Below, in pieces: positions 26,687 through 54,929 of a stretch of DNA of 64,000 nt. Every line of letters begins with the position of its first letter. Within the stretch, counting starts at the first letter, position 1. The stretch lies in the sequence record NC_048047.1; one strand, given 5' to 3'. The notes beneath the pieces are model-generated. The model was given only the letters and a program-made list of their open reading frames with translations, had not been told where the DNA came from and made no database searches. Both the position numbers and the translations under genes were made by a program.

Positions 26687-28751
26687 ATGACCAAGATGCT
26701 GGTGCTCGAACAGGCGATCGAACGCTTCCCCGTCCTGCTCCTCCTGGCGCAGGGCGTGGGACGCTGGACGCGTCTGCGCGACACTAGCATTGACGAGCCC
26801 ACCCTGTCGGCGCTGGTGACCGAGGGCGTCGTCGAGGTTGGGCGCTACAAGCCTGACCAGCGGGTGCGTGGCCGCACGCGGACCTTCCGGGCGCTGGCCC
26901 TCACCGCCAAGGGCGAACTGCTGTCGGCCATGCTGCGCGACGCCTTCCGCGAGCACAATCTGGCCTGGAGCTATGGTCCTGACGACGGCGTGGGGCGTGT
27001 GGCCATGCGCGCCGACTGGGGCCAGCCCAAGATCGAGTACGTCGCTGACGGATACCTGGGTCACCGGCGCAAGGTGATCACCGCCCGGCCCGACAATCAC
27101 AAGACCAAGATGAAGAAAGCCGCCCAACAGGCCCTGGCCAAGTGGCGTCTATGGCAGAGAGCACCGACATGAGCGATTACGAGCGTCAATTCGAGGAACA
27201 GTTCGACGACCTGGAGGTCGACCGTCGCCGTGCGCGCAGCCTGATCGACGACTTCGCCACGCACGCCGTGCCCGAGGACAAGAAGGATGCGGTCGACAAG
27301 CTGATCGGGCTGGCCAACTACTTCGATCACCTGGAGATCAAGCTGGACCTGGAGACGGCGATCGCCGCCTGGGCGCTCGTTGAGGAGGCGCTGCTGTGCG
27401 GCCCCGAGGAGATCGACGACCTCATCCAAGACATCGCGGCGGGCTAAGATGCAGACCGGTATCGTCGATCGCACCTATGAGACCCGCAAGGAATACTGGG
27501 TCGTGCGAGGCTTCTCCAAGAGGTCCAACTGCTACGTCTACCCCAATCATGGCTGGTCCTATACCTCCTGGACCCGCACCGTCGGCGACACCTATGACAC
27601 CCTGGAACAGGCCCGCAGGGGCATCCAGGGCGGCTATATCGAGGACATGATCGAGACCCAGCAGGTCGTCGACATCGAGTTCCTGCACTACAAGCGCGTC
27701 CGCCAGATCGCCGAGCACGTCGAGGTCTTCGCCTTCCGCGCCGATGGCGAGCCATCGACCCTGGCCACGCCAACCGTGGTCGTCGAGAACTGGACGCTAC
27801 GGCCGGACGACTACATCGGCATCGGAAGCGAAGACAACAGCGACGTCGCCATCTATGGTCGCGTCACCGCCTTGCGCGACGGCAAGGCCTATATCGACGT
27901 CATCAACGGCGGTTGGATCATGGTTGTGCGCATGGACGGCGACCAGACCGTCATCGACGCCGAATCCGGCTGCTGCCAGGGCGCCGATGAAGGCGAAGAC
28001 ACCAGGGTCGGCAGACCCGTGCGCGTCCTATTCCAGGGCGTGCCCGACCCGCATCAAGACCCCGAGTGCTACACCACTCAGATGGACGCGTGGCGTGACC
28101 AGCAGGAGGCGAAGGGCGCATGATCGAGATCGCTCACTATCGGCATCCCGCGCAAAGCACCCGCTGGGAAACGGATTTCTATGTCTTCGCCAGGGTCGAG
28201 TTCCCTTCGAGCCAGGGCAAGCCGATCTTCGAGGAAGTCGTCTGGGGCGCCGACTTCGCCAGGACCGGATGGCGCAAGGTCAATGCTGAAGGCGTCAGTC
28301 CGGTCGGGTTCCAGCGCCGTGAAGATGCCGACAAGGACGTGATGTCCGATCGCGCGCGCTGGTTCAACGGCCAGGAACTCACCGCCGTCCATGATCTGCG
28401 CTTCCTCAAGCGCACCGTCGTCACCGCCACCTATTATGAGGACGTGCAATGATCGACGAGATCGAGGTGATCCTGCGCACCTACCACAAGTCCGGCCGCG
28501 ATGGCGATCGGGCCACACGCGACAAGCCCTATCGCGACTACGAGATCGTGCTGCGGCGCCCCGTCGCCGAACTCGAAGTCCCCGTCCGCCTCTTCGATGG
28601 ATATGACAGTTTCAACGTTTCGATCCGCTCTGATCAGTACCGCCTCGCCGAGGCCCTGGCAAACCAGTTGGCCGACCTCTTCCAGTCAGCCGTCATCCGC
28701 GAAGACTATGAGCCTCAGGTCACGACAACCTGGGTCAAACGAGAACAATAA
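26687..28751 (+). CDS. hypothetical genes (26687-27172, 27169-27447, 27449-28123, 28120-28452, 28449-28751)
   Basis: coupled ORFs. Confidence 0.7.
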
Positions 28752-28761
28752 GGGAAACCCC

Positions 28762-29367
28762 ATGGACCGTCGTTCATTCCTCGCCGCCGGCTTTGCCGCC
28801 GCCCTGGCGCCGGCGATCGCCCAGGCCTATCCGCTCACCGATCCAACCAAGCTGATCGACAGCTTCCTGATCGACCGCGTCACCAGCGGTGATCTGGCCT
28901 TCAAGCCCACGACGCCGGCCATGCTCTCGCTGGCCCGCAACATGACCAGCCGTCTGTTCATGCAGCCGGTCGACACCACCTCCTACCGCCTCTCGGACTG
29001 GGGTGTGCGGCGCGGCCATTTCTTGCTGGTGGATCGTTTGTTCGACCCCTCCAAGGGTGGCGCCAAGAAGCTGATCCGCGACGTCTACGAGCTTAGCGAG
29101 GAACACCACCGTGATCCCACCGGGCGACGGTTCATGTCCGTCGCCGTGGGCAAGGATCGCGATGTGATCGCCCGTATGCAGTCGCGTGATCGCGCGCCGG
29201 GCGGCATCGTCACCACCACCCTGACCCGCACCCAGGCCAAGCAGAACGACTGGCGCATGGCCTATCTGCGCGCTGGCCGCCTGCGCCCGTCGGGCTACCT
29301 GCACACCAGCGACATCCTGCTGCTGGAGCCGACGGCGGCCTTCCCAAAGCTGACGCGTGTGGCATGA
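28762..29367 (+). CDS. Tat-signal protein, paralogue family member 1
   Basis: MDRRSFLAAGFAAALAPAIAQA; C-terminal TLTRTQAKQNDWRMAYLRAGRLRP. Confidence 0.7.
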   Translation: MDRRSFLAAGFAAALAPAIAQAYPLTDPTKLIDSFLIDRVTSGDLAFKPTTPAMLSLARNMTSRLFMQPVDTTSYRLSDWGVRRGHFLLVDRLFDPSKGGAKKLIRDVYELSEEHHRDPTGRRFMSVAVGKDRDVIARMQSRDRAPGGIVTTTLTRTQAKQNDWRMAYLRAGRLRPSGYLHTSDILLLEPTAAFPKLTRVA

Positions 29368-29920
29368 TCCCGCTCCCGATCGTCCAGGATACGCATGAGA
29401 CCAAGACCTACTTCGTCGTCCACGCCCAGGCCCGGTCGACCAAGAGCGGCGCTGTCTGGCCGATCTATCTGGCCGGCGACCGCGCGTTGCGCGGCTGGGC
29501 GCAGTATCCCTACCACATGACCGGAGACCAACCGTTTCGGTTTAAGGCTGTGGAGGAGGCCTGGGCCGCCGCCGCCAAGGACACCGTCGGCTACAAGGTC
29601 GAGGGCGTCGTGGTCACCGAGCACATCGTGGAAACCCGCACCACCCACAAAACGATCGATCACCGATGCACCTAGATGTAAAACCCGAACTCTGCCTCAT
29701 GGGCGAGGATGTGGAACGCGACCTCGACGTCCACGGCGGCTTCGACTGGATGGTGCTGTCCTATGCCCAGACCATCTTCTCCCATCCCGTCTTCGTCGAG
29801 CGTTTCGACACCGAGGAGATGGCGATCTTCGCTGGCCGTCAGCGGCTCGAAGAGGGCTATCGCCATGTCGACGTCGTCAAGCAAGTCGCCTATTCCTGCA
29901 TGCCCTGGATCGAGGACTGA
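29364..29920 (+). CDS. two hypothetical proteins (29364-29675, 29666-29920)
   Basis: coupled ORFs. Confidence 0.65.
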
Positions 29921-29923
29921 CCC

Positions 29924-30676
29924 ATGAACCTCACTCGTCGCGCCATTCTCGCCTCCGCTGGCATCGCCGGCGCCTTCTTTGTCATGCCGGCCATCGCCAA
30001 GGCGCCGATCAGCGAGCGCGTTGAAAAGTGGCTGGCCCAGATGGTCTATGGCGGCAACTTCTCGGTGCATGTCCAGGCGGTCGATCCCGAAGTGCTGGAA
30101 GCCTTGCGCGCTGGCGCGCTCGCCGAGCAGCATGACGCCTGGGTCCCGGACAGCCCCTCCAACGTCGTCACCATCTCCCGCCGCGACATGGTCCGCCTGA
30201 CGCCGCGCGGCGTCGAGATGGGGCAGGTGTTCCTGGCCGCCCGCCTGGGCCGGCATGCACGCTTCCTGATGGCCCAGGCGATCGACTCCAAGCCCGCCAA
30301 ACAAGGCTACGCCTACAAGGTCCTGCGCGGCAGCGAGGCTGAGAACGCCAACTTCAAGCGCGTGTTCGGCAAGCCATATTCCAACGGCGCCCTGCCGCGC
30401 ACGGTGTTGACGCAAGAGCAGGCGGCCAGGGGCGACTGGCGCATGGTCCTGCTGCGCGAGGCCTATCTGCGGCCCGCCGCCGCCGGTTCGACCCTCATCG
30501 CCCTGGAGCGCACGCCGGCAGGCGAGGACTGGTATCAGGCTTGCCTGATCGACCAGCAATACGATCGAGTCGAGGCGCGCCTGAAGAAGATGGGCATCAA
30601 ACCCGTCTTCGACATGAACAGGGCCGAGGCCTTCGCGGTCAACTTTGGTCGCGGCAAGATCGTGGCCGCCGGATGA
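29924..30676 (+). CDS. Tat-signal protein, paralogue family member 2
   Basis: MNLTRRAILASAGIAGAFFVMPAIAKA; VLTQEQAARGDWRMVLLREAYLRP. Confidence 0.7.
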   Translation: MNLTRRAILASAGIAGAFFVMPAIAKAPISERVEKWLAQMVYGGNFSVHVQAVDPEVLEALRAGALAEQHDAWVPDSPSNVVTISRRDMVRLTPRGVEMGQVFLAARLGRHARFLMAQAIDSKPAKQGYAYKVLRGSEAENANFKRVFGKPYSNGALPRTVLTQEQAARGDWRMVLLREAYLRPAAAGSTLIALERTPAGEDWYQACLIDQQYDRVEARLKKMGIKPVFDMNRAEAFAVNFGRGKIVAAG

Positions 30677-30996
30677 TCGATCGTCGCACCCTCCTGGCAG
30701 GCCTCTTCACCGCGCCCGTCGCCCTGCCGGCCATCGCCCAGGCCCTACCTGTCGATCCTAATCCTGGTCCGGGCAAGATGCTCCTGGGCATCGATCCGGG
30801 CGCCCCTGGCGGCGGCACGGCGGTGTGGATGATGCGTGACCCGCGCGGATATCTGGTCACCTGCTACAAGTCCCAAGGCGGGACCTGGGACGACGCCGTC
30901 TATCTGTCGACCGACGGTCTCAATCAAGCCAAGTTGCTGCCCGGCGAGAGCCTGATCCTGCGTGGCGATGGCGTCATGGAGCATCTGCGTCGATGA
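30673..30996 (+). CDS. short Tat-signal protein
   Basis: MIDRRTLLAGLFTAPVALPAIAQA. Confidence 0.65.
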   Translation: MIDRRTLLAGLFTAPVALPAIAQALPVDPNPGPGKMLLGIDPGAPGGGTAVWMMRDPRGYLVTCYKSQGGTWDDAVYLSTDGLNQAKLLPGESLILRGDGVMEHLRR

Positions 30997-32321
30997 CCGA
31001 TCAGTTCACCGTCGAGGAGATCGACCGCTTCCGCCAGTGGTACAACCACATGGAGGACAGCAACCTGGAATTCGTCGAGCCCGAGGACGCCAAGTTGGCG
31101 ATCAAGGTCCATGACCTTGTCGGCCGCCGGGTCAGCAGCCGCACGCGTGATATCGCCACGCCGCAAAAGCACTTCCTGCTCTCCTTCGACGAGGAGGACA
31201 TGAGCGCCCAGGACTCGGTGTCGTCGACCCTGACGCTCGTCAACGTCCTGATGCGGCGCGGCGTGGCCTTCGACATCACCTCCGAAACCACCATCATGCT
31301 GGTCTGCGCCCCCGAGGTTCTGGAGAAGGTCATGCCCGACCTGCCCGGCTGGCGTCATGCGCCACTCTACGAGACGGAAGAGAGTCCTCGCCCGTGAATG
31401 TCACCATCTACCAAGCCAATCCCGCCACCGCACAGGCGTCGCTTTTGGTGATCTGCCTGACGCCGGCCAACAAGGACTTTCCGTTCGTCTATGAGACGCG
31501 CCCCACCTTGAAGGAGGCCGAAGAGTTCGCCTATGCCAGCCTGAGCCGAGGCTACCGCCGCGCCGACGTCTTCGAGCAGGTCCCCATCGTTTCCTATAGG
31601 ATCGACGAATGAGCGCGCCTCAGCCGCCCGGCGATCTCGTAGGCGCCGGCGACGCCGTCTGGGATTGGGCCGATCGCCTCTCCACCTACACCCAGGACCT
31701 ACACCGCAGTCGTGAGCTTTGGCAGCAGATCGTCCGGGGCGACATGTTCTGTGGCTCTTGCCGGCTGTGGATGACCAAGTCCTGTCCCCGCGAACACAAT
31801 GACGGCCTCTCGGGCTACAGCCGAGGCCCTTCCAGCGAAGCCTTGAAATGCAGCCAGTACCAGATCACCCATTCGTCGGCGAAACTCTTGGAGGACCGCA
31901 AGACGGAGTACCAGCAAGTGGCTGGGCGCCTTCGCAGCGCTGGGTAGACTGGTCGTTCGAGGACGGCCTTCGCCAGCAGGAGGCTCGCCGCGAGAAGTGG
32001 TTCCAAAAGCTCCTGATCAATGCCTCCTGGGAGGCCTTGGCCAAGATCGCCTGTCCCGATGAGGGGCTGCGCGGCATCGTCTATGAAGGCCAACTCTTGT
32101 GGTGGAGCCCGTGGTTGGCCACCCACGGCGACGCCATGCACTGGCTGAACAAGCGTGGCTTCGAAGGCCGTGACGCCTGCATCGAGATGCACTTCGACGA
32201 GGCTGGCAAGCTCTACCTGACGGCCTGGGACCAGTCATCCTATGACGAGGCCCTGGCCCATCCGTCCCTGAACGGTAAAGACTGCAAGCCCTTCAGGCTG
32301 CGACGAGGCCTGCCGCACTGA
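30993..32321 (+). CDS. hypothetical genes (30993-31397, 31394-31612, 31609-31947, ~31848-32321 with uncertain start)
   Basis: coupled ORFs. Confidence 0.6.
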
Positions 32322-32366
32322 GGCCGGCTTGACGCACCCTAAGCACCGTGCGAGAAAGCCGTTGCC

Positions 32367-33446
32367 ATGACCCGACCTGTCGACACCAACGCCAAGCTCC
32401 TCACCCGCGACCAGTTCCGCGAGGGCGTCTTCGCCCGCGATGGGCATGCCTGCGTCTTTTGCCAGCGCAAGGCCGAGGAGACGAACGAAGGCAAGCTCGA
32501 CGCCCACCACATCTTGGAGCGCCGACTGTTCCAGGCGCCGCACGAGAAGGGCGGCTATTTCCTGGGCAACGGCGCCACGGTCTGCGAGCACCATCACCGC
32601 CTATGCGAGTCGACCCAAATCTCCACCGACGAGGTCTATGCCGCCTGCGGGCTGACCAAGCGTGTCCTGCCCGACCACCTCTACAGCGACTTCGACTACG
32701 ACAAGTGGGGCAACATCGTCCTGCCCACCGGCGAGCGCCTGAAGGGCGAACTGTTCGGTGATGAGTCGGTTCAGAAGATCATGGCCGAGGCCTCGCCGCT
32801 GCCGGTCTTCAAGCACTACGTCAAGTACCCTCGCACCAACCACCTGCCTTGGTCGCCCGGCCTCAACGATGACGACCGGGTGCTCAAGGACATGCTGTCG
32901 TTCGTCGGCGAGCGCGTGATCGTAACCACCAAGATGGACGGCGAGCAGACCAACATGTACCGGGATCACTTCCACGCCCGATCGGTCGAGAGCGCCCACC
33001 ACGAGAGCCAGGGCTGGGCCAAGAACTTCTGGTCGCAGATTTGCGGCGACATTCCCGAGGAATGGCGCGTCTGCGGCGAGAACCTCTACGCCAAGCACTC
33101 GATCGCCTATGACAACCTGCCCACCTACTTCATGGGCTTTGGCATCTGGACCGACCTCAATGTCTGCCTGTCGTGGGACGACACCCTGGAATGGTTCGAG
33201 CTTCTGGGCGTCACGCCCGTGCCGGTGATCTACGACGGCGTCTATGACGAAAAGCTGATCCGGGAACTCTACGACGAGAAGACCTGGGACACCTGTGAGG
33301 GCTATGTCATGCGCGTGGCGCGGTCGTTCTCCTATGGCGAGTTCCGCTCCTGCGTGGGCAAGTTCGTCCGCGCCGGCCACGTCCAGACCACCAAGCACTG
33401 GAAGCACGGCCAGCGGGTCGAGAAGAACGGTCTCGTGCCCGCATGA
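32367..33446 (+). CDS. HNH endonuclease - RNA ligase fusion
   Basis: N-terminal RDGHACVFC...LDAHHILER...GNGATVCEHHH (HNH); C-terminal KYPRTNHLPWSPG, TKMDGEQT (motif I), CGENLYAKHSI, EGYVMR. Confidence 0.85.
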   Translation: MTRPVDTNAKLLTRDQFREGVFARDGHACVFCQRKAEETNEGKLDAHHILERRLFQAPHEKGGYFLGNGATVCEHHHRLCESTQISTDEVYAACGLTKRVLPDHLYSDFDYDKWGNIVLPTGERLKGELFGDESVQKIMAEASPLPVFKHYVKYPRTNHLPWSPGLNDDDRVLKDMLSFVGERVIVTTKMDGEQTNMYRDHFHARSVESAHHESQGWAKNFWSQICGDIPEEWRVCGENLYAKHSIAYDNLPTYFMGFGIWTDLNVCLSWDDTLEWFELLGVTPVPVIYDGVYDEKLIRELYDEKTWDTCEGYVMRVARSFSYGEFRSCVGKFVRAGHVQTTKHWKHGQRVEKNGLVPA

Positions 33447-33628
33447 CCGCCAACGGCAAGTTCATCGTCGTACCCACTGCCTCCGGCTATGCAGTGCGGC
33501 ACCTTTCGCATCTGGGCGAGTCTAATACGATCGCCTTTTACGGCTATGGTGATTACCCCACCAACGAGGCGGCCAGAAACCTCATAGCCGAACTCAACGC
33601 GGCGCTGGAGCGCCGGCTTCTCGCGTGA
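33443..33628 (+). CDS. hypothetical protein
   Basis: ATGA overlap with ligase stop. Confidence 0.6.
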   Translation: MTANGKFIVVPTASGYAVRHLSHLGESNTIAFYGYGDYPTNEAARNLIAELNAALERRLLA

Positions 33629-33906
33629 AGCCGCCAAAGCCGCAGGACTTTGAGTCGCGCCACGCCCGCAAGGCCGCCGCCATCCAGGCCCGCAAGGATC
33701 GGCAGGCGGCCTTCAAGGCCAAGCGCGACGCCGACGGTTTCAAGCGATATGATATCGCCAAGGCTCGCGCCCTCTATCTGGAGGGCCTGTCTCAATCCGA
33801 GGTCGCCCGCCGCGTCGGCGTCCACTTCATGACCATCCACCACATGGTCCATCGCGACTTTCCCGAGATCGTCGCCGAACGCGCCCGCCTGCGAAAGAAG
33901 GCTTGA
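33625..33906 (+). CDS. helix-turn-helix DNA-binding protein
   Basis: ARALYLEGLSQSEVARRVGVHFMTIHHMV. Confidence 0.75.
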   Translation: MKPPKPQDFESRHARKAAAIQARKDRQAAFKAKRDADGFKRYDIAKARALYLEGLSQSEVARRVGVHFMTIHHMVHRDFPEIVAERARLRKKA

Positions 33907-33971
33907 CCTTGCTCCGACATCGTGCGAGAACCCTGTTGACACGCCGACAGGCGCCAACGGAGGGCAAGACC

Positions 33972-34145
33972 ATGAAGACCGCAGACCTGGGCCAAGGCTG
34001 GTACGCCAACGCCAATGACGACGGCAGCTTCACGATCCGCAACCCCGACAAGGGCCAGCGCATCAACCTGACGGGCGAGGAAGCCGAGCGCTTCGTGGCC
34101 CTCTACCGCGCCGCCGAGGCCGAGGTCGCCGTCAAGGCGGGCTGA
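33972..34145 (+). CDS. small hypothetical protein
   Basis: SD GGAGGG; downstream of stacked TTGAC/TGCGAGAA promoter at 33903-33941. Confidence 0.65.
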   Translation: MKTADLGQGWYANANDDGSFTIRNPDKGQRINLTGEEAERFVALYRAAEAEVAVKAG

Positions 34146-34149
34146 TCCC

Positions 34150-34590
34150 ATGAAGCTCGGCCCCAACGACATGTTCGTCATCCGCGATATCATGGGCGGC
34201 GTCGCCGTGGCCTTCCGCACGGAAAGCGTCAGCGGCAACCAAAGCTGTAGCCTGGACATCGCCCGCTTCGCCTTCGCCACCTACCCGACGATCGGCGCGG
34301 CCCAAGACGCCGCCCAGGCCCTGCGCAACAAGCTCAACGAGGCCCTGGTCAGCGAACGGCTGGCCAGTCTCGTCCTGACGACGCCCAAGTGGGACCCCGA
34401 CCTCGTCTACATCACGGGCGATCAGGTCGCCTATAAGGGCGAAGTCTTCGAATACTGCTCGGCCGAGCCCACCCGACCGGGGAGCGCGCGCCCGGACTGG
34501 TCCTCCCGCTGGGAGAACGTCAAGCACATCGGCCGGCTCAACCATCGCCGCGCTGAACTGGTGCGCCAAGCCGCCCAGGCGAAGGCCTGA
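34150..34590 (+). CDS. hypothetical protein with C-terminal CBM5/12-like module
   Basis: PKWDPDLVYITGDQVAYKGEVFE...PDWSSRWE. Confidence 0.55.
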   Translation: MKLGPNDMFVIRDIMGGVAVAFRTESVSGNQSCSLDIARFAFATYPTIGAAQDAAQALRNKLNEALVSERLASLVLTTPKWDPDLVYITGDQVAYKGEVFEYCSAEPTRPGSARPDWSSRWENVKHIGRLNHRRAELVRQAAQAKA

Positions 34591-34667
34591 GATCGGTGTG
34601 CTAGAAAACAGTTGACAACGTCGTCTGCGCGCGGTCTATAGGCGCAAGACCTGAAGAGGAGTCCCGC

Positions 34668-35861
34668 TTGCGCTGGTTGAAAGAACTGTTCGTCCCGTCC
34701 TGCAAATGCGAGCGCCTCGGGCATCGCTGCCGCACCGAGTGGCGCGCAGGCTATGTCGAGCGGATCGAAGGCAATATCTGGAACAACTCCTACGTCGCCT
34801 TCTTCGTCCGTCAGGAACGCGTGGTCTGCACGCGCTGCAAGTTCGAAGTCAAGCCCTGGACGGTCGTCAAGCACGAGGGCCTTAGCGGGTTTGGTACCTC
34901 CCGCGAAAACTGGGAGCAAACCCAGAATGGTGGCTATTGGACCGAGTGGGGTCACAAGCCTTTTTTGAAGGAATCTGCGTCGTGAACCACAACGAAATGG
35001 CCGTCCTCTATGTCAGCGACCGCTGCGATGACGATGGCGACACCTACATCTTCCTGACCTTCGACAACGAAGACGAGGCCAACGCCCTGGAGCGCCGGCT
35101 GTCGTCGGCCATCGCGCGCACCCAGCGTGACGATGGCCTGTCGTACGAGGCCTATCGTCGCCGGCGCCTCGCCGCGCTCGTCGAGGTCGAACCGACCCTG
35201 GACAGCTTCTCGCCCTTCCACGAGATGAACCACCAGCGCATGTCGTTCCACGTCGATGTGGTCCCGCTGCGACGGGCGCCACGCGAGCGCATGCAGGTCA
35301 GCGACCACCAGCCCTCGGCCATCGCCCAGGATACCGGCCGCGACGAGATCAAGTCGATGCAGCGCGCCGGCATGGACGTCAAGCGCGGGCTGCTGGAACA
35401 CGCCTACTTCCTCCTGCTGGCGGACATGCCCCGGCACGAGATCAACGACAGCGCCACCATGGCCGCCATCCGCGCGGTCATTGTCGACAAGGCCGCTTGA
35501 CACGGACTTGAAAGCATCAACTTAAGGTTTCACAATGATCTTCTTCGATTCTGATCCGATCGCCAACCTGTCCTTGAACGTGCTGATGTGGTGGGCCGGC
35601 GTGGGCCTCTCCTACATGGTCCTGATGTGGATCGCCGTCATGCTCGACAACGCCATCTGCGCGACCTTCGGCTGGCGCCCTCATGTCGAGCGGCTGCTGT
35701 TCAAGAGCTTTGATCGCTTCGACCTGCCGCCTATGTGCGTGGTCGGCTTCTGGTTCATCGCCATCCCGTTCCAGGTGTTGTGGGCGGTCATCGGCTTGGT
35801 GCAGATGGCGCACAAGCCCAGGTCCGTCAAAAACGAGCGCCCCTATCAAGGCTGCGTCTGA
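34668..35861 (+). CDS. hypothetical genes (34668-34985, 34982-35500, 35535-35861 membrane protein)
   Basis: promoter TTGACA at 34612; coupled ORFs; two TM segments in the last. Confidence 0.65.
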
Positions 35862-35864
35862 TCC

Positions 35865-36044
35865 ATGATCACCGCGCAGGAAGAACGAGACGCCCGCGAG
35901 GAGGGCTGGCAGGCGGCCAAGGCTGGCAAGCGCAAGTCCTCCAATCCCCACTTTGGCAAGCGCGGGCGCGCCTGGGACCAAGGCTGGATCGCCGGCAAGG
36001 ATGATAGCGAGACGCCGCAGCGGCCTGACCTCGACGAGGCGTGA
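35865..36044 (+). CDS. Rmf-like small protein (59 aa, not in ORF track)
   Basis: MITAQEERDAREEGWQAAKAGKRKSSNPHFGKRGRAWDQGWIAG. Confidence 0.6.
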   Translation: MITAQEERDAREEGWQAAKAGKRKSSNPHFGKRGRAWDQGWIAGKDDSETPQRPDLDEA

Positions 36045-36142
36045 CGATGTGAGATCGCGATGGTCTGAGGCCGTGACGAAGTGAGAGTTTGAAGTCGCGA
36101 GCGGGTCGCCGAAGGCGGCGCGTGATGCGTATAAGGAAGACC

Positions 36143-36424
36143 ATGGCCAAGCCTCCCTACCGGATCGCGATGATCTACGACATCAACGGCGTGCTCTGGC
36201 ACCGCTGTGAGAAGTTCGTCAAGATCGCCGGCGTGTCTGACTACTTCCCGCTGGAGATCGGCTGGAGTGGCGTGGGTGTGCGCCAGGATGCCGTGTTCTC
36301 CGAATACGAAGATGCCTTCCGCTACCTGAAGCGCTACATCGCCGCCAGCAATGGAAGCTACCAGCCCAAGGTCGTCGTCTACTTCGACGACAACGGCAAT
36401 CCTATCCCTGAAGAGGACCTATGA
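36143..36424 (+). CDS. hypothetical protein
   Basis: SD AAGGAAG; ATG at 36143. Confidence 0.65.
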   Translation: MAKPPYRIAMIYDINGVLWHRCEKFVKIAGVSDYFPLEIGWSGVGVRQDAVFSEYEDAFRYLKRYIAASNGSYQPKVVVYFDDNGNPIPEEDL

Positions 36425-37158
36425 CCCAGCCGCCCATCACGCCGCTCGACCGCGACATCGTCGATCTCTTCCAGGAAGAAGGCGCCGAAACGATCCTGGA
36501 GATCGTGCCGCTTCTCTTCGACATGGTCCTGTCGATCGCCCGCGCGCAAAAGCTCTCCTCCAAGGTCCAGCGCTTCGGCAACGTCAAGAACCCGTTCGCC
36601 GGCGAGGGCGTCAAGCCTAACTTTGAACTGCTGGAGGACGAGCTTGGCGACCTGCTGGCCATCGCCGGCATCCTGGGTTCGCGCGGCATCCTCAACAAGG
36701 AGCGCGTCGACGCCCGCGTCGCCTGGAAGACCGGGATGCTCACGACCCACGGCTCGATCGACTGGACCAAGCTCGATCTGCCCGAGAACCAGCCGCGCAC
36801 CTTGAAGGACGCCACCGACGAGGACTTGGCCGGCCCGAACTTCGGCGGCTACGTCAACAAGGCGCCATACCAGGAAATGCGCCTGCGCCAAGCCATGACT
36901 GGCTCCAACGCGCCGACCGAGAAGGACTGGGTCGAGGCGCTGAAGGTTCTGAACGCCTTCCTGCGCCTGACGCCCGAGGAACTGGGCCACCGCCAGGAAA
37001 TGGCTATGGTCCGTAAGGTTGGTGGTTCGGTGGCCCTGGACTTTGGCGACTACCGCCCGGAGTATCAGGGGACTCTGAAGCACCGAGGCGCGGCGATCCT
37101 GGACATGCTGTTCGACCGCAACGTCGCCGATGCGCTGGGCCTGTCCGCCGACGCATGA
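36421..37158 (+). CDS. MazG-like nucleotide pyrophosphohydrolase with C-terminal extension
   Basis: FQEEGAE...SKVQRFG...LLEDELGDLLAIA acidic motifs. Confidence 0.7.
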   Translation: MTQPPITPLDRDIVDLFQEEGAETILEIVPLLFDMVLSIARAQKLSSKVQRFGNVKNPFAGEGVKPNFELLEDELGDLLAIAGILGSRGILNKERVDARVAWKTGMLTTHGSIDWTKLDLPENQPRTLKDATDEDLAGPNFGGYVNKAPYQEMRLRQAMTGSNAPTEKDWVEALKVLNAFLRLTPEELGHRQEMAMVRKVGGSVALDFGDYRPEYQGTLKHRGAAILDMLFDRNVADALGLSADA

Positions 37159-37904
37159 AGTCGCCCAAGGCCGTCGAGGTGATCCTGGCCAAGCACGGCG
37201 CCAGGATCGCCGAGGTCGTCACCAAGTACATCACCGGCTTTGAGGGTGAGTCCGATCCGGCCGCCCTGGCGCGCCGCGTGCTCGACGCCCTGATCGCGGC
37301 CGACCCCTCGCCCAACTCGATCTATGTCGACCGCATGATCCTGTGGATGCAGCGCGGCGCCTGGGTCTATGCCGACGATCTGGAGCATGCCCTATGCGTG
37401 CTCGAAATCTACACCCGCCTCAAGCCTAGCCTGCCGCAGGCGCAGCGTGATGTCGGCCGCTTCGACTACTGGTGGCAGTTCGAGGATTTTGTCGGCAGTC
37501 TGCCGGGCGTCGACATCATGGCCTATATCCGGTCCAAGGACATCGCCGCCTACGAGCAGTCCCTGTTCGACGCCGGCGAGGCCTCGCTGTTCCTCGACAC
37601 TGACGCGATGCGGATCGTCATCCCCCATACCCTGGCGACCAGCATCTATTTTGGCAAGGGCGCCAAGTGGTGTACGGCCATGGAAGGAAGCCGCCATTTC
37701 GAGGTCTATAACCGATCGGGCTACCTCTACATCGTCACCTTCAAGGACACCGGCGCGCGCTGGCAGCTTCACCTGGAGACGAACTCATACTGCGATGAGC
37801 GCGACAGGCCTGTCTTCAACTACCATGAGGTCCTGGCGTTGATCGAGGCGCGGCGACAGACCTGGGTCAGGCTTGCGAGAAAACAGTTGACATCCTCCTA
37901 TTAG
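37155..37904 (+). CDS. phage protein with KWCT motif, function unknown
   Basis: FGKGAKWCTAM...YLYIV...WQLHLETNSYCDERDRP. Confidence 0.65.
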   Translation: MKSPKAVEVILAKHGARIAEVVTKYITGFEGESDPAALARRVLDALIAADPSPNSIYVDRMILWMQRGAWVYADDLEHALCVLEIYTRLKPSLPQAQRDVGRFDYWWQFEDFVGSLPGVDIMAYIRSKDIAAYEQSLFDAGEASLFLDTDAMRIVIPHTLATSIYFGKGAKWCTAMEGSRHFEVYNRSGYLYIVTFKDTGARWQLHLETNSYCDERDRPVFNYHEVLALIEARRQTWVRLARKQLTSSY

Positions 37905-37946
37905 CGCGGGACAACGGCGCATCGCTGAAGAACCAAGGAGACGCCC

Positions 37947-40137
37947 GTGCTGCAAATGGTGAAACTGGACCCGCGCATCGGCGTGCTTCAGACCGAACGC
38001 GGCATGGCGTTCTACGCCTATCCGAACGGCTATGACGCGCCGGCCGTGCGCGGCAGCCGCGAGAAGGTCGAGTACGCCCTGGGCGTGCGCCGGCGCTTCA
38101 ACGCCCTGGGTGATGTCCCCTTCGGCCCCTACCTGACCGTCTATGACGTCGAGGTCACGGTGCGCTCCTGGTCGCATGGCTATCTGCGTTTCACCCGCGA
38201 GCCCATCCGGTTCGAAGGCATCCGGGCGCCGTCCAAGTCGGCCGCCAACCAGGAGGCCCGTCGCCTGCTCAAGCACGGTCGCGGCGGCCTGCCGTCGTGC
38301 AAGGCCACCTTGCGAGAAAACGGTTGACAGCCTGCTAGGCCTATGCGAGAACACCTCGAAGACGGCGCCTGCGCCGCCCGCAAGGACCCCTAAGATGACC
38401 TTCGACCGCACCATCACCGCCGAGTTGGGCCAGTATGCCGAGGGCGAGTTCGAGCGCTACGGCACGCGCCACTACAACCTGCGCGCCGACGACTATGGCT
38501 ATGCCCTCGGCTATCTCAAGCACGAAGCCGACGGGACCTGGATCGTCTACAACTTCCACCGCGATGCGATCGGCATGCCGTCGTGCCCGATCACGCCCTT
38601 CCCGACGCAGGAAGCCGCGCTGGCGTGGTGCAACGAACGCTACCTTGCCGCCCACGCGCGCGCCGAGGCCATGGTCGCCCAGGCCATGGAAATCATTCGC
38701 GCCGATCTGTCGCCGGTTGAACGCTACGAGAAGGACTGGGGCAACTCCGCCTTGACCATCGTGGTGTCGCTGATCTTCCCCTGCGAGCCGGGTGAAGGCG
38801 TCTCGCTGGCCCACGTCGTCCATGCCCGCATGACCATCGTCGAGGCGCTGACCGCGCTCGACATCCTGGCCGAGAGCAAAATCTACCCGTCGATCGTCGG
38901 CCGCGTCATGGACTTTGACCCGGTGGGCAAGCACCTGGGCGGCGCCTTCTGGCGACGTGACGCCTTCGGCAGCCATCCGGGCGACTACCACCTGCTGGGC
39001 TGGCGCTCGATGCGCAACTGGAACGCCTACCTGCAAAAGAAGAAGGAGAAGGCCGCGTGAAAAAGACCCACAAGCTCACCAAGGAAGAAGCCGACCTGAT
39101 CCGGCGCGTGGCCTGCAACAATGTCGGCCGAGGCCGCGTCAAGCTCGAAGTCAACCTGCGCGAGGACAATCACGGCAACGCCGGCTACAACATCCTGTCC
39201 ATGGTCGGCGATCACGACATGACCGACACCGCGCCCTGGGGCCGGTTCCGCAGCCGTGTCTTCCCGCTGGTCGACGGCGCCGCTATGCTCGACGTAGCGA
39301 TCCAGTCCTCGCACGAAGATGGCGACGGTCCCGAACTCCTCTCCCATGTCAAGCCGGTCTGGGAGGCCGGCGTGCTGGTGCGGATCGAAGGCTATGATCG
39401 GGTCCTATGGCAGCGCGCCGCGTGACCGAACCCGTCATCCCGACCCTGACGCTCCTGGCCATGCTGCGCGACGCCCAGACGAGCGTGATCCTGTCGTCGG
39501 GCCGCGAACTCAGCTACATCGACGCCGACGTGCTGATCAAGGGCGTGGCCGAGTACGTCAGCGACTACACCGTCCTCTGGCTGGAAAAGCTGCTGCTCGG
39601 CGTCCACATCACCGAGGCCGAGCACATCCTGTCGGCCGCGCAGAACGACCCGGAATTTCCGAACTATGTCGCCCTGCGCGTCTGGGCGCATCGGGTCAAC
39701 GGCAAGTGGAACCGCGACTTCATCAAGATGCTGCGCGCCCGCGCCACCACCCAGCCGCCCGGCGTCACCGACATGCTGGCCCAGGCCGATCCCGATGACT
39801 GGGCGGTCAAGCGCTACCTGGGCAACGGCGACGTCATCGTGCGCCTCACCACCAGCGGCGTGATCGCCGACGTCGAAGCCGTCAAGCTGGTCTGACCATG
39901 GCTCGCAAGCCCAGGCTCGTCAGCGTGCGCGGCAAGGCCGAACTGGTCGAGGGAACCAAGGTGCGCTTCATCTGCCCGCTGGGCCACACCCAGGTCGAGG
40001 ACCTGGGCCGAAAATCCCTGCCGCTACCCAGGCGCTACTCGGCCGAGGCGGTCAAGCGGCTGGCCCACTGGTGGCGCCAGGGCGTGACCTTCGACTGCAA
40101 GCGCTGCACCAAGGATCAGGCCGCTTCGAGACAGTAG
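37947..40137 (+). CDS. hypothetical genes (37947-38327, 38395-39060, 39057-39425, 39422-39895, 39898-40137)
   Basis: promoters TTGACA at 37887 and 38324; coupled ORFs. Confidence 0.7.
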
Positions 40138-40349
40138 CGCTTGCGCAGCACGTCCTTGTAAAAGGTCATCGCCTCGGCTTCGGTGGGATAGCGCTTGAGG
40201 CTGGTCCCGTCCTCGAACTGGTAACGGGCGCGGACCTCCCAGCCCTGGCCATCATGCGAGGCCGAGCAGAAGAAGTTGTTGCCCTCGTCCTGCCACTTGC
40301 GGCTGGCCGCGTTCCAGAAGATCACGTCGTCGACGGTGCTGCGGTTCAT
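40116..40349 (-). CDS. hypothetical protein (minus strand)
   Basis: good codon bias on minus strand; follows 40353-40550. Confidence 0.7.
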   Translation of the reverse strand: MNRSTVDDVIFWNAASRKWQDEGNNFFCSASHDGQGWEVRARYQFEDGTSLKRYPTEAEAMTFYKDVLRKRYCLEAA

Positions 40350-40352
40350 GTC

Positions 40353-40550
40353 CTAGAAACTCCAGAGATGCTGGGCGCCGTGCTCGGTCGCCAGCCATTC
40401 GCGCAGGCTCTCGTCGTCCTCGATCTCATCGGGGAGTTCCAGGCCCACGAGCATGAGCGCTTTGTCGCAGTCCTCCTTGACGTCGCCCAGGTTGTCAGCC
40501 AGCAGGATGCTGTGGACGAGGCTTATCAAGACGTGCTTGGGATCAGGCAT
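40353..40550 (-). CDS. acidic hypothetical protein (minus strand, probably leaderless)
   Basis: ATG lies 6 nt after a TAATCT -10 element. Confidence 0.7.
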   Translation of the reverse strand: MPDPKHVLISLVHSILLADNLGDVKEDCDKALMLVGLELPDEIEDDESLREWLATEHGAQHLWSF

Positions 40551-40556
40551 GCCGTG

Positions 40557-40585
40557 AGATTAGGACCGCAGGCACCGTTGGTCAA
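40557..40585 (-). promoter_or_regulatory. leftward sigma70-type promoter
   Basis: minus strand TTGACC-17 nt-TAATCT. Confidence 0.75.
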
Positions 40586-40688
40586 GCTAATTGGCGCGCC
40601 TGTAAAAGATCGCGTCACGGTGACATTCCCACTTGCATGTCCATTAACCACCCCATAAAGTGAGCCCACGTCATCACGAGGGTTTCCC

Positions 40689-41477
40689 ATGACCACGCGC
40701 CGCGATCTCTTCGTCTCCGGTTTGGCCCTGGCCGCCGCCTCCGCCTCGGCCATACCGGGTATGGCTGCCGCCAAGGCCCTGAAAAACAAGGACGATTTCG
40801 ACAAACGCGTCCTCGACGTCCTGGCGCAGGGCGCCGCGACCGGCGGCGGATTCCAGCAAGGCCTGGACCAAGACGTCGCCGACTATCTGGTCAAGCACAA
40901 GCTGGCTTTCGGCATCACCCTCAAGAGCTTTGGCGACATCCACGTCTCCAACCCGGCCAAGCCCGCGACCGTCGACACCTACGGCCCCACCAAGGAAGGC
41001 CTCCAGGCGGGCAACATCGTCCTGGCCGATCGCCTCTCGCCTGACGCCGGCGCCATGCTACGCAAGGCCTTCGCCACCCGCGCGCCCGCCAGTGAAACCC
41101 GCAGGGGTTCGCGCGCCGAGGTCGAGCGTCGCCTGTACGCCCACCTGACCGGCCGCGCCTTCAAGGATCGCCTGCCGGTCGCGCCGCTGGTCCTGAACGA
41201 GACCTCCCACCGCCAGGACTTCATCCTCGCCGGCCTGGAACAAGGCTCCCTGCGGCCGGCCTCGTGGTCGGGGAATTCCTATACCGAAGGCGGCGTCCTC
41301 TGGGTCGAGCGCACCCCCACCTTCCTGATCGGCCTGGACTTCTCCTACGGCATGACCTGGGAGATCGACAAGGTGGCGATGAACAACGACATCGTCCAGT
41401 TCCAATCCCTGCCATCCCACGAGCGCGACGTCTTCACGCGCCTCGTCTCCAGTCACCTCACCGACGTCTTCGGCTAG
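40689..41477 (+). CDS. Tat-signal protein, paralogue family member 3
   Basis: MTTRRDLFVSGLALAAASASAIPGMAAA; VLNETSHRQDFILAGLEQGSLRP. Confidence 0.7.
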   Translation: MTTRRDLFVSGLALAAASASAIPGMAAAKALKNKDDFDKRVLDVLAQGAATGGGFQQGLDQDVADYLVKHKLAFGITLKSFGDIHVSNPAKPATVDTYGPTKEGLQAGNIVLADRLSPDAGAMLRKAFATRAPASETRRGSRAEVERRLYAHLTGRAFKDRLPVAPLVLNETSHRQDFILAGLEQGSLRPASWSGNSYTEGGVLWVERTPTFLIGLDFSYGMTWEIDKVAMNNDIVQFQSLPSHERDVFTRLVSSHLTDVFG

Positions 41478-41673
41478 CAGCGCAGCCCGCGACGCGGTTC
41501 GCTCCCCCTAGGGTCGAAGTGTGCCGCGCGAAGCGCTCGCGTTATGGTATTTCAAAGTTGCCTGACGGTTGCCGTATCAACAGGTTTTCTCAATTTCTGA
41601 GAGTCATCGCCTAGGCTGCGTTTCGGCACGCCCCCGCGAGGCGATCTCTCATGCCCAGCCACCCAGGAGCCCC

Positions 41674-41934
41674 ATGCCCATCGGCAGTCACCATCGCTAT
41701 GTGATCGGCCAGCGCTGGTACACCTCCAGCGAGGTCCAGAGCCTGATCGTCCAGACCCTGCCCCGCCTGCCGGCCGGCAAGACCGCCGTGCGCCTGGACC
41801 TGGAGTTCGGCAGCGCCGATCTCTCCCAGAAGCGCATCAGCGCCATGCTCCAGGCGCTCGCCAAACAAGGCCGCGTGCGCAAGGTGCGCCATGGCCACTT
41901 CGAAGCCGTCCCCAGGAAACCCATCCATGACTGA
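41674..41934 (+). CDS. small winged-helix-like protein
   Basis: SD AGGAG; RISAMLQALAKQGRVRKVRHGHFEA wing motif. Confidence 0.6.
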   Translation: MPIGSHHRYVIGQRWYTSSEVQSLIVQTLPRLPAGKTAVRLDLEFGSADLSQKRISAMLQALAKQGRVRKVRHGHFEAVPRKPIHD

Positions 41935-43075
41935 ACCCAAGCGCAAGGGCCGCCCGCCCGGTGAGAGCAACCTGAAGCGCCGCGTCGCCGGCAAGCTCTA
42001 CGGCACGCGCGAGTTCAAGAACCTGATGATGGAGACCATCGCCAAAATCCCCAAGGGCGAGCCGACCGTCGCGGGCATCATCAAGCTGTGGGGCGACCCG
42101 GACTGGGACACCCCGCCGGCCAAGCTCGACCTGCGCTCCTGCATCGACCGCTATACCCGCCAGGGCACGCTGGTGCCCATGGAGCGAGGCGTCTACGAGG
42201 TCAGCGAAATCCCACGCCTGACGCCCTCGCATGATTTCCAGCTTCTGGCCGAGCGCGCCATCCGCGCCAACGGCGGCTTCATGAAGGCCAAGGACCTGCG
42301 CCGCGCCCTGGGCTATAGCTCCGAGGACGCCCGCAACACCACCCTGTGGAAGTCCCTGCGCATGGAGGGCTCGAAGGTCCGGCGCGACTGCTTCAAGCTC
42401 TACCTCTACAACCTGCCCGAAGACGATCTGCGCAACCTCGTGCTCCAGGGACGCTGGGCCTTGCCCTACTTCCGGGGCGTCTATCTGGGCATGGCCCCCA
42501 TGCCGGCCGATCCCAGCGCCCGGCCCTGGCGCGCCCTGCTCGATCAGCATCTCTACAGCGTCGGCGCCGCCCTGGCCCAGGCGCGCGAAGCCAATGGCGT
42601 CGACATCGAAGAGGTCCTGTCCTTCCCCGAGATCGTCGCCGCGCTCGATGTCGCCCGCCTGCGCAATCCCGCCCGCCTGTCCAATCGCGATCTGGCCCGG
42701 CAGGTCGAGGAGATGCCCGACAACGTCATCATCGTGGGCCAGCGCGAGACCCGCACCGGCCGGCTCGTCGACATCAAGGTCACCACGCCGCGCGACGAGT
42801 CCGATCCCAAGCACCTCCTGATCCGCGACGTGCGCCTGGATCAACTGGTCCGCCTGGAGAACCCGCCGGCCGATCCGCTGAGCGAGTTCCTCGACTATCA
42901 CGACTATGCCAGCCTCGGCGCGGACTTCTTCGAGGCCTGGGCCAAGGCCTTCAATGTCGATCCGATCGCCCTGTCGTGGGGGCGCCTTGGTCTGCGTCCC
43001 GACAGCGGCTGGCATGTGGGCGCCGGCGATGGGGATGAAAGCGGCTGGGCCGATGACGCCCAGGATGAGGACTAA
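41927..43075 (+). CDS. multi-HTH DNA-binding protein (candidate replication initiator or regulator)
   Basis: RYTRQGTLVPMERGVYEV wing; GGFMKAKDLRRALGYS HTH; VGAALAQAREANGVDIEEV XRE-like helix. Confidence 0.55.
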   Translation: MTEPKRKGRPPGESNLKRRVAGKLYGTREFKNLMMETIAKIPKGEPTVAGIIKLWGDPDWDTPPAKLDLRSCIDRYTRQGTLVPMERGVYEVSEIPRLTPSHDFQLLAERAIRANGGFMKAKDLRRALGYSSEDARNTTLWKSLRMEGSKVRRDCFKLYLYNLPEDDLRNLVLQGRWALPYFRGVYLGMAPMPADPSARPWRALLDQHLYSVGAALAQAREANGVDIEEVLSFPEIVAALDVARLRNPARLSNRDLARQVEEMPDNVIIVGQRETRTGRLVDIKVTTPRDESDPKHLLIRDVRLDQLVRLENPPADPLSEFLDYHDYASLGADFFEAWAKAFNVDPIALSWGRLGLRPDSGWHVGAGDGDESGWADDAQDED

Positions 43076-52432: not shown

Positions 52433-52607
52433 CCGCCCCAAGTCGACGATAGCCGACATCTCCAGGTGTCGCCGATCGACGACTTTGACGCCTGCGGGGC
52501 GCGTTAACCATGTTTGTTTACCCTCTTTGGCCCGTTAACCTTAATAAAATCCCAGGTAGTACCAGGTATGGCCGGTACTACCAGCGGTAATACCGGAGAA
52601 AAGCCCT

Positions 52608-53177
52608 GTGTTTCGCTATCTGACCGCCCTTTTCGACCACATCGTCCACTACAAGCTCGCCCCGGCCCATCGCCGCATCGCCCCCGAGGGGCAGGCGGCC
52701 CTCGACCGCCTCAAGGCGGTTGATCGCCAGATCGAGGCCGGCGTCTACCAAGGCAGCGACGTGCGCGGCACCCGCGCCTACGCCTTCCACCACATCCCGC
52801 CGCGCGAGCGCCTGATCGCCGCCAACAAGGGCCGCGACGTCACCGGCCTTACCCCGCGTCGCGAGCGGCGCCTGTCGGTGGCGGGCAAGAAGCCCTGGCA
52901 GCCGCTGCTGGTCACCGAGCCGCCGCGTGATCCCGAGGAACTGGCCCGTGAGCGTGAGGATGAGGCCAGCACGTTGCGCGCCAGCGCCGAGCATCTGGCC
53001 AAGCGCGCGGCCTCGCGCCTGATGCGCCAGCGGCTGGGCGAGCGCTATGCGCCTTACCGTAGCCTGGGCCAGGAGGTGCTGAGCAATGTCGGCCTGGACG
53101 CCACCTGGGTGAGGGCCGGCTATCAGCAGGCCATCGACGATGCTCACCCGATCGCCGCCACGCCGGACGAGGTCTAG
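52608..53177 (+). CDS. hypothetical basic protein
   Basis: 189 aa ORF with typical codon bias after TerL. Confidence 0.65.
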   Translation: MFRYLTALFDHIVHYKLAPAHRRIAPEGQAALDRLKAVDRQIEAGVYQGSDVRGTRAYAFHHIPPRERLIAANKGRDVTGLTPRRERRLSVAGKKPWQPLLVTEPPRDPEELAREREDEASTLRASAEHLAKRAASRLMRQRLGERYAPYRSLGQEVLSNVGLDATWVRAGYQQAIDDAHPIAATPDEV

Positions 53178-53286
53178 GGACCCTGCGTCCAAGCCCTTGG
53201 GGACCCTGGCTGAAAAACCGCCAGGGACCCTGGACAAAACAGGTCAGGGACCCTGCGCCAAAACGGTCGGGGACCCTGGCCAAAAT
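53177..53286. repeat. five GGGACCCTG repeats, 23-24 bp period
   Basis: copies at 53177, 53200, 53224, 53247, 53270; last four followed by an A4-5 tract. Confidence 0.9.
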
Positions 53287-53664
53287 CGCTTCCAGCCCAG
53301 CCGGAAATTCACATCCCCATGCTCCTTTCCCTCACCAGCCTGATCGGCGCCCTGCTGATCGCCGCCGTCGCGGTCTTCGCCCTGTGCGGCGAGATCGACT
53401 GGTGCATTGACGGCCAGTGCGGCTCCTGGCGCGGCCCCTTTGCCCCGCCCGGTCCTAGTTCATCGCTTTCGTGACAGGTCTTGATTTCCTTGGGCTTTTT
53501 GGCCTGCTGTCACGATTCAAAAGGTTTCACGCGTGCCCCGAGCCCTGAAAATCCACCCAAAATGGGCGATTTTGATCGATCTCTGGCTCTGGGCGGCGGT
53601 CCGCGTCTACGCATGGGTCCACAATGCGAGGCCGGAGGCCGGTGCGCCACCCACCAAGTCGTGA

Positions 53665-53694
53665 GACATGTCAAGCCCCCTCGCTTGACATGTC
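53665..53694. repeat. perfect 11-bp inverted repeat
   Basis: GACATGTCAAG-8 nt-CTTGACATGTC. Confidence 0.8.
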
Positions 53695-54103
53695 ATAGTT
53701 TGTCCGAAAGGTGACAGCGTCGGCGCAAAAGAAATCGCGTTGACTCCGCAAACCCAGGCCAGCCTTGACGTTGCGCCATTCTCCGCAGGTTTTGCGGTGA
53801 TTGCCCCGGCTATTCGCCGCACGTGTCAGCAAAACCGCCTATGTGACGTCCTGCTTGACATGGCTCAAGTTCCGTGGCACGGGAAAGGCTCGGGCGTGTG
53901 CTCGGATGGAAAGCTCCGCTGTCGGCTTCAAGCCAAGGCCTGGGTGGAACACCAGCGCTAGACCTGCCCGCCGACGCCCTCGACCCCATGCGATCGCCGG
54001 CGGGGGACCACCGCCTTCGCCTGCCACACCCGGCGAGGATCGAAGGCGAGAAACGCCCACCAGAGCCCGCCGCCCTGGTGGGCGTTTTGGTGTCCGGCCT
54101 TGA

Positions 54104-54298
54104 ACTTGACGTCGGGCCATTTCGCCGCCGACTTGACGTCGGATCATTTGCCCGGCCGACTTGATGATCGCCCATTTCGCCTGGACTTGACGCCGGCGCA
54201 TTTCAAATTTGACGCGAGCGCATTTCCTTCCCAAATTTGACGAAAGGCCATTTCAAACTTGACTTGACGTCATTTCATTTCTTGACCTGACGCCATTC
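54104..54298. repeat. array of TTGACG-N6-CATTT units
   Basis: units at 54106, 54133, 54161, 54187, 54209, 54237, 54259, 54264, 54282, plus an outlier at 53765. Confidence 0.9.
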
Positions 54299-54314
54299 CA
54301 TCCCGCTGGCCGGG

Positions 54315-54530
54315 TAAGGTTAACGGCCGATTAACCATGTGGCGAGTAAGGTTAATTTTCAAGGTTAACGCGCATGGTGAACGAACAGGGTTAACGCGCC
54401 TTAAGGTTACCCGTTAAGGTTAACAGGCGTTAAGGTTAACGGTTAGGGTTGAAAATTAAGGTTAACCCGGCTCAAGGCCCTACCGGCGGCCGTTAAGGTT
54501 AACGCCAGGGGCAAAATCGTTAAGGTTAAC
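54315..54530. repeat. cluster of TTAAGGTTAAC-like repeats including a TTAA-N7-TTAA box
   Basis: full copies at 54414, 54430, 54456, 54493, 54520 plus partial copies; TTAA-N7-TTAA at 54320-54334. Confidence 0.85.
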
Positions 54531-54533
54531 GCC

Positions 54534-54620
54534 CAAAACAGCGAAAATCAGCAAAAATCGTCCAAAAATAGCGAAAATCAGCGCAAAATAGCGCTTTTTA
54601 GGCCGAAAATCACCGAAAAT
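54534..54620. other. phased A-tract region (predicted bent DNA)
   Basis: repeated A4-5 tracts about every 10-11 bp (CAAAACAGCGAAAATCAGCAAAAATCGTCCAAAAATAGCGAAAATCAGCGCAAAATAG...). Confidence 0.75.
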
Positions 54621-54929
54621 CCGGTTTTCTGACCCATTTTAGGGTTAATGTCGCGCCCTAACCCGATTTTGGGCGACACCCAGGCGAACGGGCGCCGGCC
54701 GGGTCGTGATCCCCGGCCGGTGGGTCAGTGGAGCAGCCAGAGCAGAAACGCCAGCGCCGCCAGTGACCAGCCGTTCAGCAATTTCAGGGTGGGCGCCTCT
54801 CTCGTCTGCCGTGGCCGCTCGCCACCCCTCATTCATCGCATACAAGAAAACTGTTGCCAAGCCCCAAAGATCGCTTGACAGCATAAAAGCCCAATGCGAC
54901 AAGAGGCCATCCAAACGGGAGACACCCCA

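Follow-up and report, generated by a model that had tools for sequence, protein, structure and literature searches.

Twin-arginine-type signal regions in a family of three anciently diverged, predicted winged-helix proteins of giant Caulobacter phages

Four genes with signal-type N-termini

The stretch of DNA analyzed here (the window, 64,000 nucleotides in length) corresponds to positions 248001–312000 of the genome of Caulobacter phage CcrBL9 (NC_048047, 322,272 bp), a member of the genus Bertelyvirus with C. vibrioides CB15 as its host; by megablast, window positions 28000–42000 matched this genome with 100% identity. A preliminary description of the window had singled out four genes as encoding a family of phage proteins with twin-arginine translocation (Tat) export signals. 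These genes do belong to the phage. Their starts at 28762, 29924, 30673, and 40689 are exactly the RefSeq starts of four CcrBL9 coding sequences on the + strand, i.e. gp234 (28762–29367, 201 aa), gp231 (29924–30676, 250 aa), gp230 (30673–30996, 107 aa), and gp207 (40689–41477, 262 aa), each of which is annotated as 'hypothetical protein'. The four genes are set in a long same-strand run of small genes surrounding an RNA ligase. Three of the starts are preceded at a distance of 7–11 nt by a Shine-Dalgarno-like GAGG or AGGG; the remaining one, that of gp230, overlaps the stop codon of gp231 as ATGA. Scanning for promoters and terminators gave sites no more numerous than in shuffled sequence. In none of the four proteins could the mature domains be assigned to a family from Pfam, PHROGs, or NCBIfam.

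Read from the RefSeq starts, all four proteins open as had been described, with an RRxFL-like motif, a hydrophobic stretch, and an AxA site (AIA, AQA, or AKA). The N-terminal residues are M-D-RR-SFL in gp234, MNLT-RR-AIL in gp231, MI-D-RR-TLL in gp230, and MT-T-RR-DLF in gp207, and the putative cleavage regions end in APAIAQA, MPAIAKA, LPAIAQA, and IPGMAAAKA, respectively. The order of elements is the same throughout: a polar residue, the arginine pair (RR), any residue, two hydrophobic residues, 18–22 uncharged residues, a proline, and small-x-small sites. The predicted signal covers approximately residues 1–22 of gp234 (MDRRSFL...AIAQA), 1–25 of gp231 (MNLTRRAIL...PAIA↓KA), and 1–30 of gp207 (MTTRRDLF...AAAKA), while gp230 carries a signal of the same type (MIDRRTLL...PAIAQA). 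A basic residue is present in the c-region of gp231 and gp207.

A six-frame scan of the 322 kb genome detected RR-type signal-like N-termini in coding-like frames of only 6–7 genes. Since four of these fall within the 12.7 kb considered here, the set is more than would be expected by chance. CcrBL9 also has signals without RR, beginning MIKFR..., MKR..., or MIHSTLLR....

Some further N-termini in CcrBL9 were noted. A fifth small open reading frame (ORF) of 85 aa with a GC content at third codon positions of 0.86 lies at genome positions 235304–235561 (+), about 12.7 kb upstream of the window. It has a textbook ...PDRRSFLALLGLGVGG... N-terminus and is a further RR-signal candidate, unrelated to the gp231 family. 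Within the window, positions 4075–4644 (+) encode a predicted lipoprotein of 189 aa (MRRNILF...LTLAAC) with an RR n-region, a lipobox cysteine, and no Pfam match. The end of this gene is overlapped by a second one (4641–5036, +), whose 131-aa product has an N-terminal transmembrane segment. This pair (4075–5036) could be related to the envelope or to lysis.

Homology, distribution, and predicted fold of the family

By pairwise sequence comparison, gp234, gp231, and gp207 are true paralogues. Similarity was detected between gp234 and gp231 (BLASTP E = 1e-7) as well as between gp231 and gp207 (E = 7e-6), so that gp231 is the central member; gp234 and gp207 are connected only through it. The C-terminal motif that three of the genes had been reported to share was found in gp234 (aa 154–176; 29221–29289), gp231 (aa 162–184; 30407–30475), and gp207 (aa 169–190; 41193–41258), where the L(N)...D(F) spacing is shorter by one residue. 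Given the BLASTP E-values between the paralogues, the motif is part of a real homology. The fourth protein does not belong to this family. Pairwise comparison as well as searches with phmmer and the family profile revealed nothing common to gp230 and the family beyond the signal. The proposed single family therefore holds for three of the four genes, with gp230 sharing only its N-terminus. Neither a further paralogue nor a connection to capsid proteins was found in CcrBL9 by phmmer or by the family profile over all six-frame ORFs, and the capsid-fold family PF05065 had no match in this genome.

The family has a narrow distribution. Among 50,697 phage records, tblastn matches of the gp231 type were restricted to the giant Caulobacter phages CcrSC, the C1/RB23/BL47/J4 group, CcrPW, and CcrColossus, while gp207 matched CcrSC only. 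A HMMER profile search over 1.84 billion protein representatives returned 11 proteins; the matches that were traced came from giant Caulobacter phages or from long phage-like uncultured assemblies with the same neighbourhood. A word-indexed homology search gave CcrSC orthologues only, as did a scan of IMG/VR, and the matches in public sequencing runs were confined to metagenomes and covered approximately 6% of the words.

A maximum-likelihood tree of 14 members resolved three groups, namely gp234-like (support 100/99), gp231-like (85/85), and gp207-like (83/90), the last of which contains long branches that call for caution. As each group has members from different phage lineages, the triplication is old. 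By tree and searches, we are dealing with three anciently diverged copies of one family that is found only in giant Caulobacter phages (Bertelyvirus and Colossusvirus) and in similar uncultured contigs. To call the family 'expanded', as had been done, overstates the case of three ancient copies per genome.

Comparison of CcrBL9 with CcrSC gave ratios of nonsynonymous to synonymous substitution rates (dN/dS) of 0.15 for both gp234 and gp231, 0.30 for gp230, and 0.61 for gp207, the fastest-evolving paralogue. Purifying selection acts on all four genes and, like the Shine-Dalgarno-like sites, indicates that real genes are present. For two of the CcrSC orthologues, the RefSeq start seems to be placed too far downstream, with the loss of RR. 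In gp229, the orthologue of gp234 (L002:1357-1944), an in-frame ATG 18 nt upstream restores MDRRSFL, and in gp205, the orthologue of gp207 (L010:1534-2283), an in-frame ATG 33 nt upstream restores MTTRRALL.

All three regions of the signal are conserved in the family. The 14 complete N-termini without exception follow the pattern (D/T/S/N)-RR-x-(L/F/I)-(L/I/F), whereas sequence identity between the mature parts amounts to no more than 23–36%. In most members the hydrophobic h-region comprises 18–25 uncharged residues. The c-region shows almost no variation in its Pro and Ala, and the total signal length is 22–30 aa.

For the mature part, the AlphaFold2 model of gp231 (predicted local distance difference test, pLDDT, 76; predicted template modelling score, pTM, 0.71) suggests that the protein is likely to consist of two tandem winged-helix domains. 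According to DSSP, the predicted model contains an H1-S1-H2-H3-S2-S3 unit twice (approximately aa 29–92 and 138–196), followed by a long C-terminal helix. All of the top 50 matches obtained with VIA-align were winged helix-turn-helix (wHTH) proteins, e.g. VanR, MepR, MarR, F-93 of SSV1, and PadR, aligning to approximately aa 27–112; the best root-mean-square deviation was 2.1 Å over 69 residues. The best AFDB cluster match was likewise a MarR-type HTH protein (E = 5.9e-3). Together with the topology, these matches delimit a putative first domain (30002–30259, ~aa 27–112). The putative second domain (30335–30514, ~aa 138–197) is supported by its topology and by a PadR cluster of the ESM Atlas, which aligned to aa 130–223 with a template modelling (TM) score of 0.56. 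It holds the shared C-terminal motif, which in the model corresponds to S1-H2-H3 and the start of S2, i.e. to the HTH and the first wing strand; the gp234 motif aligns to the same elements.

Other searches were less informative. In the viral fold library BFVD, significant matches were limited to the paralogues of the family itself, and a search of the ESM Atlas by sequence features gave no usable match. No wHTH family in Pfam, PHROG, or NCBIfam was matched by sequence profile. Comparison of the two winged-helix halves by hhalign (probability of relatedness 0.3%) revealed no detectable mutual similarity and hence no sign of an internal duplication. The residues conserved in the family alignment (Leu, Gly, Trp, an Arg-Pro, and Glu-x-Thr) look structural, and the alignment contained no conserved catalytic motif or constellation. 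The mature proteins have 0–3 Cys. Their isoelectric point (pI) lies between 9.3 and 10.3 in 8 of the 11 full-length family members; it is 10.3 for gp234, 9.7 for gp231, and 6.7 for gp207. The basic pI of most members is suggestive of DNA binding.

The separate small protein gp230 has a different history. Only CcrBL9 and CcrSC were found to have its signal-bearing form; a signal-less homologue of 64 aa in phage C1 corresponds to the C-terminal half. This half (YLVTCYKSQGGTWDDAV) resembles motif VI of SF1 helicases (Pfam UvrD_C_2, E = 0.004) and, in a two-sequence search, the SF1 helicase of the phage itself (genome 136870–138363; E = 1e-4). In addition, gp230 has a stretch, LLGIDPG, that is similar to the beginning of the RuvC-like protein of the phage (genome 294652–295434). 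Both likenesses are short and may reflect either a mosaic origin or chance. The predicted structure of gp230 is all-beta and, with a pLDDT of 54, too poor for structure searching. From these comparisons, gp230 looks like a small, lineage-specific protein to which an export signal of the same type was added in one lineage.

Probable export route and alternative explanations

On balance, we favor the explanation that the family consists of folded, non-enzymatic binding proteins which are exported via the host Tat system and cleaved into the periplasm. Each protein would be made with a cleavable twin-arginine signal peptide and would adopt its fold of two tandem winged-helix domains while still in the cytoplasm. 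The host TatABC translocase would recognize it through the RR motif and move it across the inner membrane in the folded state, after which signal peptidase I would free it at the conserved Pro-x-x-A-x-A site. In the periplasm, the soluble, mostly basic tandem winged-helix protein would then act by binding. We regard export as such as very probable, while for the Tat route our confidence only slightly outweighs our doubt.

Several observations point to Tat. The N-termini of all four window proteins show the full set of sequence features that mark a cleavable twin-arginine signal, in agreement with the initial proposal, and RR is retained by each of the 14 family members with a complete N-terminus, which come from diverged phages. 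A member of the TatC family (PF00902) was detected in the Caulobacter vibrioides control genome and none in the phage. No family other than Pfam TAT_signal (PF10518) had matches in several members (5 of 13, best E = 2.2e-4). Furthermore, the mature proteins are nearly free of Cys and are predicted to fold well, which we also count in favor of Tat, as we do the basic c-region residue of gp231 and gp207.

A number of points weigh against this explanation. The signals have very short n-regions and lack the Lys found in the S/T-RR-x-F-L-K consensus. Kyte-Doolittle values of the h-regions (1.3–2.0) do not differ from those of the non-RR signals of the phage (1.3–1.8). All matches to Pfam TAT_signal stay below the gathering cut-off (10.8 bits for gp234 versus 22.7 bits), and none of the four proteins matched a Tat-signal model in NCBIfam; as these models are very short, the cut-off is a weak test. 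No cofactor motif that would explain a need for Tat was found in the mature proteins. Moreover, gp231 has Ile at the first hydrophobic position, which we take to be disallowed by the TatP pattern; the other three window proteins fit. As for the cargo, winged-helix proteins are typically cytoplasmic, and the assignment of this fold derives from a shallow alignment of 13 sequences. The Z-scores obtained with VIA-align (6.4–7.8) all lie under the caution line of 8, and Foldseek found nothing in the PDB at E ≤ 0.001 (best E = 0.084).

The sub-threshold Pfam matches and the lack of a cofactor motif also speak for export through the general secretory (Sec) pathway. In this explanation, RR would be no more than the positive charge in the n-region of a common signal peptide, as encoded by an arginine-rich phage of 64% GC. 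Hydrophobicity of the h-region and signal length (22–30 aa) are within the Sec range and match the non-RR signals of the phage, and Arg is twice as common as Lys near phage N-termini (8.9% versus 4.2% at residues 2–8). We nevertheless consider this explanation rather unlikely. The n-regions of Sec signals usually differ in which basic residues they contain, how many, and where, whereas here RR is invariant across approximately 25% identity, with a polar residue before it and an x-hydrophobic-hydrophobic sequence after it. From the Lys and Arg frequencies of the phage, we estimated a chance of roughly 1 in 1000 that some nine independent lineages would all keep RR instead of KR, RK, or KK. Since the phage does use Lys near its N-termini, with non-RR signals starting MIKFR and MKR, base composition alone does not account for an invariant RR.

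The 18–22 uncharged residues behind a positive N-terminus would also be compatible with an uncleaved N-in signal anchor, which would keep the winged-helix domains attached to the inner membrane on its outer face; in gp231, AKA is followed directly by Pro, which would prevent cleavage there. This protein has a second possible site, AIA↓K, however, and in all members the h-region ends in a conserved helix breaker, Pro, with small-x-small sites after it. The hydrophobic stretch is itself short and Ala/Gly-rich for a stable transmembrane helix. Anchoring therefore strikes us as improbable. No better is the case for DNA-binding proteins that stay in the cytoplasm or are packaged into the virion, their N-terminal peptide being a targeting or propeptide sequence and not an export signal. 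DNA binders of the cytoplasm typically have such a fold and a basic pI, but the classical n-, h-, and c-regions (the latter with A-x-A) are all conserved, no DNA-binding family in Pfam, PHROG, or NCBIfam was matched, and we know of no capsid-targeting sequence that looks like these N-termini. We judge this explanation decidedly improbable. It had also been suggested that the signals are decoys which occupy or jam the host Tat translocon. Apart from the fact that several RR signals are encoded close together, nothing speaks for such a role. Mature domains with sequence conservation, a confident model fold, and purifying selection would be superfluous in a plug, as would three diverged paralogues retained over a long time, and we find the suggestion barely credible.

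If the proteins are indeed Tat-exported binding proteins, our best guess at their role is an envelope-level function in the infected cell, such as excluding or sensing a superinfecting phage by binding the DNA that enters, the proteins that are ejected, or a structure involved in entry. This guess, which we put forward as a doubtful one, fits a fold known from DNA binders and mature domains that are basic in most cases. More specifically, giant Caulobacter phages might export the trio via Tat to bind nucleic acid in the periplasm, thereby catching or detecting superinfecting phages' DNA, either to exclude these phages or to time lysis; in this specific form, the idea is quite unlikely to be correct.

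Genomic surroundings and comparison with known systems

The small genes flanking the family members, i.e. gp235 (28449–28751), gp232 (29666–29920), and gp228 (31394–31612), by eye resemble neighbours of the family members in phage C1 (C1 gp450 and gp452). A common C-terminal pattern, ...EGY/RGY-(H/R)R-(V/A)(D/E)V..., was spotted by eye in gp232, gp228, and C1 gp452. Elsewhere in the window, two neighbouring tRNA-Arg genes with the anticodons CCG and TCT are located at 5142–5295 (−). The genome has a perfect direct terminal repeat of 22,260 bp (1–22260 = 300013–322272, 0 mismatches), the right copy of which begins at window position 52013 and takes up the rest of the window (52013–64000).

Envelope-acting phage proteins control superinfection, lysis timing, and receptor availability, and the examples known to us use Sec or lipoprotein signals. 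Our literature searches yielded no account of the proteins reported here, nor of comparable Tat substrates encoded by phages. The conservation of a Tat-type signal on a predicted fold that usually serves DNA binding in the cytoplasm poses a testable question, namely what winged-helix domains would bind in the periplasm. The three small soluble proteins could also serve as probes of Tat use during infection of the model bacterium Caulobacter crescentus. Should the trio turn out to be exported through Tat and to bind nucleic acid in the periplasm, the phage would encode a system for periplasmic DNA binding, and Tat cargo of a new class would have been found. Should it exclude other phages by DNA capture, it would mirror, on the side of the phage, the "periplasmic gatekeeping" of DNA entry that was recently described in bacteria.

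With regard to the signal, the closest comparison is with bacterial Tat signals, for which the consensus is S/T-R-R-x-F-L-K (Pfam PF10518, TIGR01409) and which are exemplified by E. coli SufI and CueO. The CcrBL9 signals resemble them in the polar residue, the invariant RR followed by x and two hydrophobic residues, the moderately hydrophobic h-region, the A-x-A site, and the length of 22–30 aa. As in CueO, RR is found within a few residues of the start. Unlike bacterial Tat signals, those of CcrBL9 come from a lytic giant phage, are without the consensus Lys, score below the Pfam cut-off, and precede a cargo without a cofactor motif.

With regard to the fold, the predicted H1-S1-H2-H3-wing topology, which occurs twice, is that of the winged-helix proteins MarR and PadR and of F-93 from SSV1 and STIV (Z = 7–7.8; the PadR TM score is given above). 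In contrast to these proteins, the CcrBL9 family matched no wHTH sequence profile and combines in tandem, in one chain, two domains without detectable mutual similarity. MarR, PadR, and F-93 are cytoplasmic DNA binders, whereas the domains of the CcrBL9 proteins sit behind a putative export signal.

As small phage proteins that an N-terminal signal directs to the host envelope, encoded among small uncharacterized genes, the CcrBL9 proteins can be likened to T4 Spackle, the T4 RI antiholin, and T5 Llp. Neither sequence nor fold is similar, the T4 and T5 proteins use Sec or lipoprotein signals, and the function of the CcrBL9 proteins is hypothetical. Searches for homology to known exclusion proteins (of the T4 Sp or Imm or the T5 Llp type) gave no PHROG or Pfam match and, apart from the paralogues of the family itself, no fold match in the PDB or BFVD.

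A phage and a bacterial system offer precedents for what a periplasmic binding protein could do. T4 RI is believed to sense the periplasmic DNA of a superinfecting phage (PMC8385771). The effector HxsA of the bacterial HXS system is periplasmic, engages incoming phage DNA, and arrests its entry (PMC13128918). HxsA is bacterial, is matured by radical S-adenosylmethionine (rSAM) enzymes, and contains a peptidoglycan-binding domain and HxS repeats (PMC13128918); it is not homologous to the CcrBL9 proteins. It provides a precedent for periplasmic action on incoming phage DNA.

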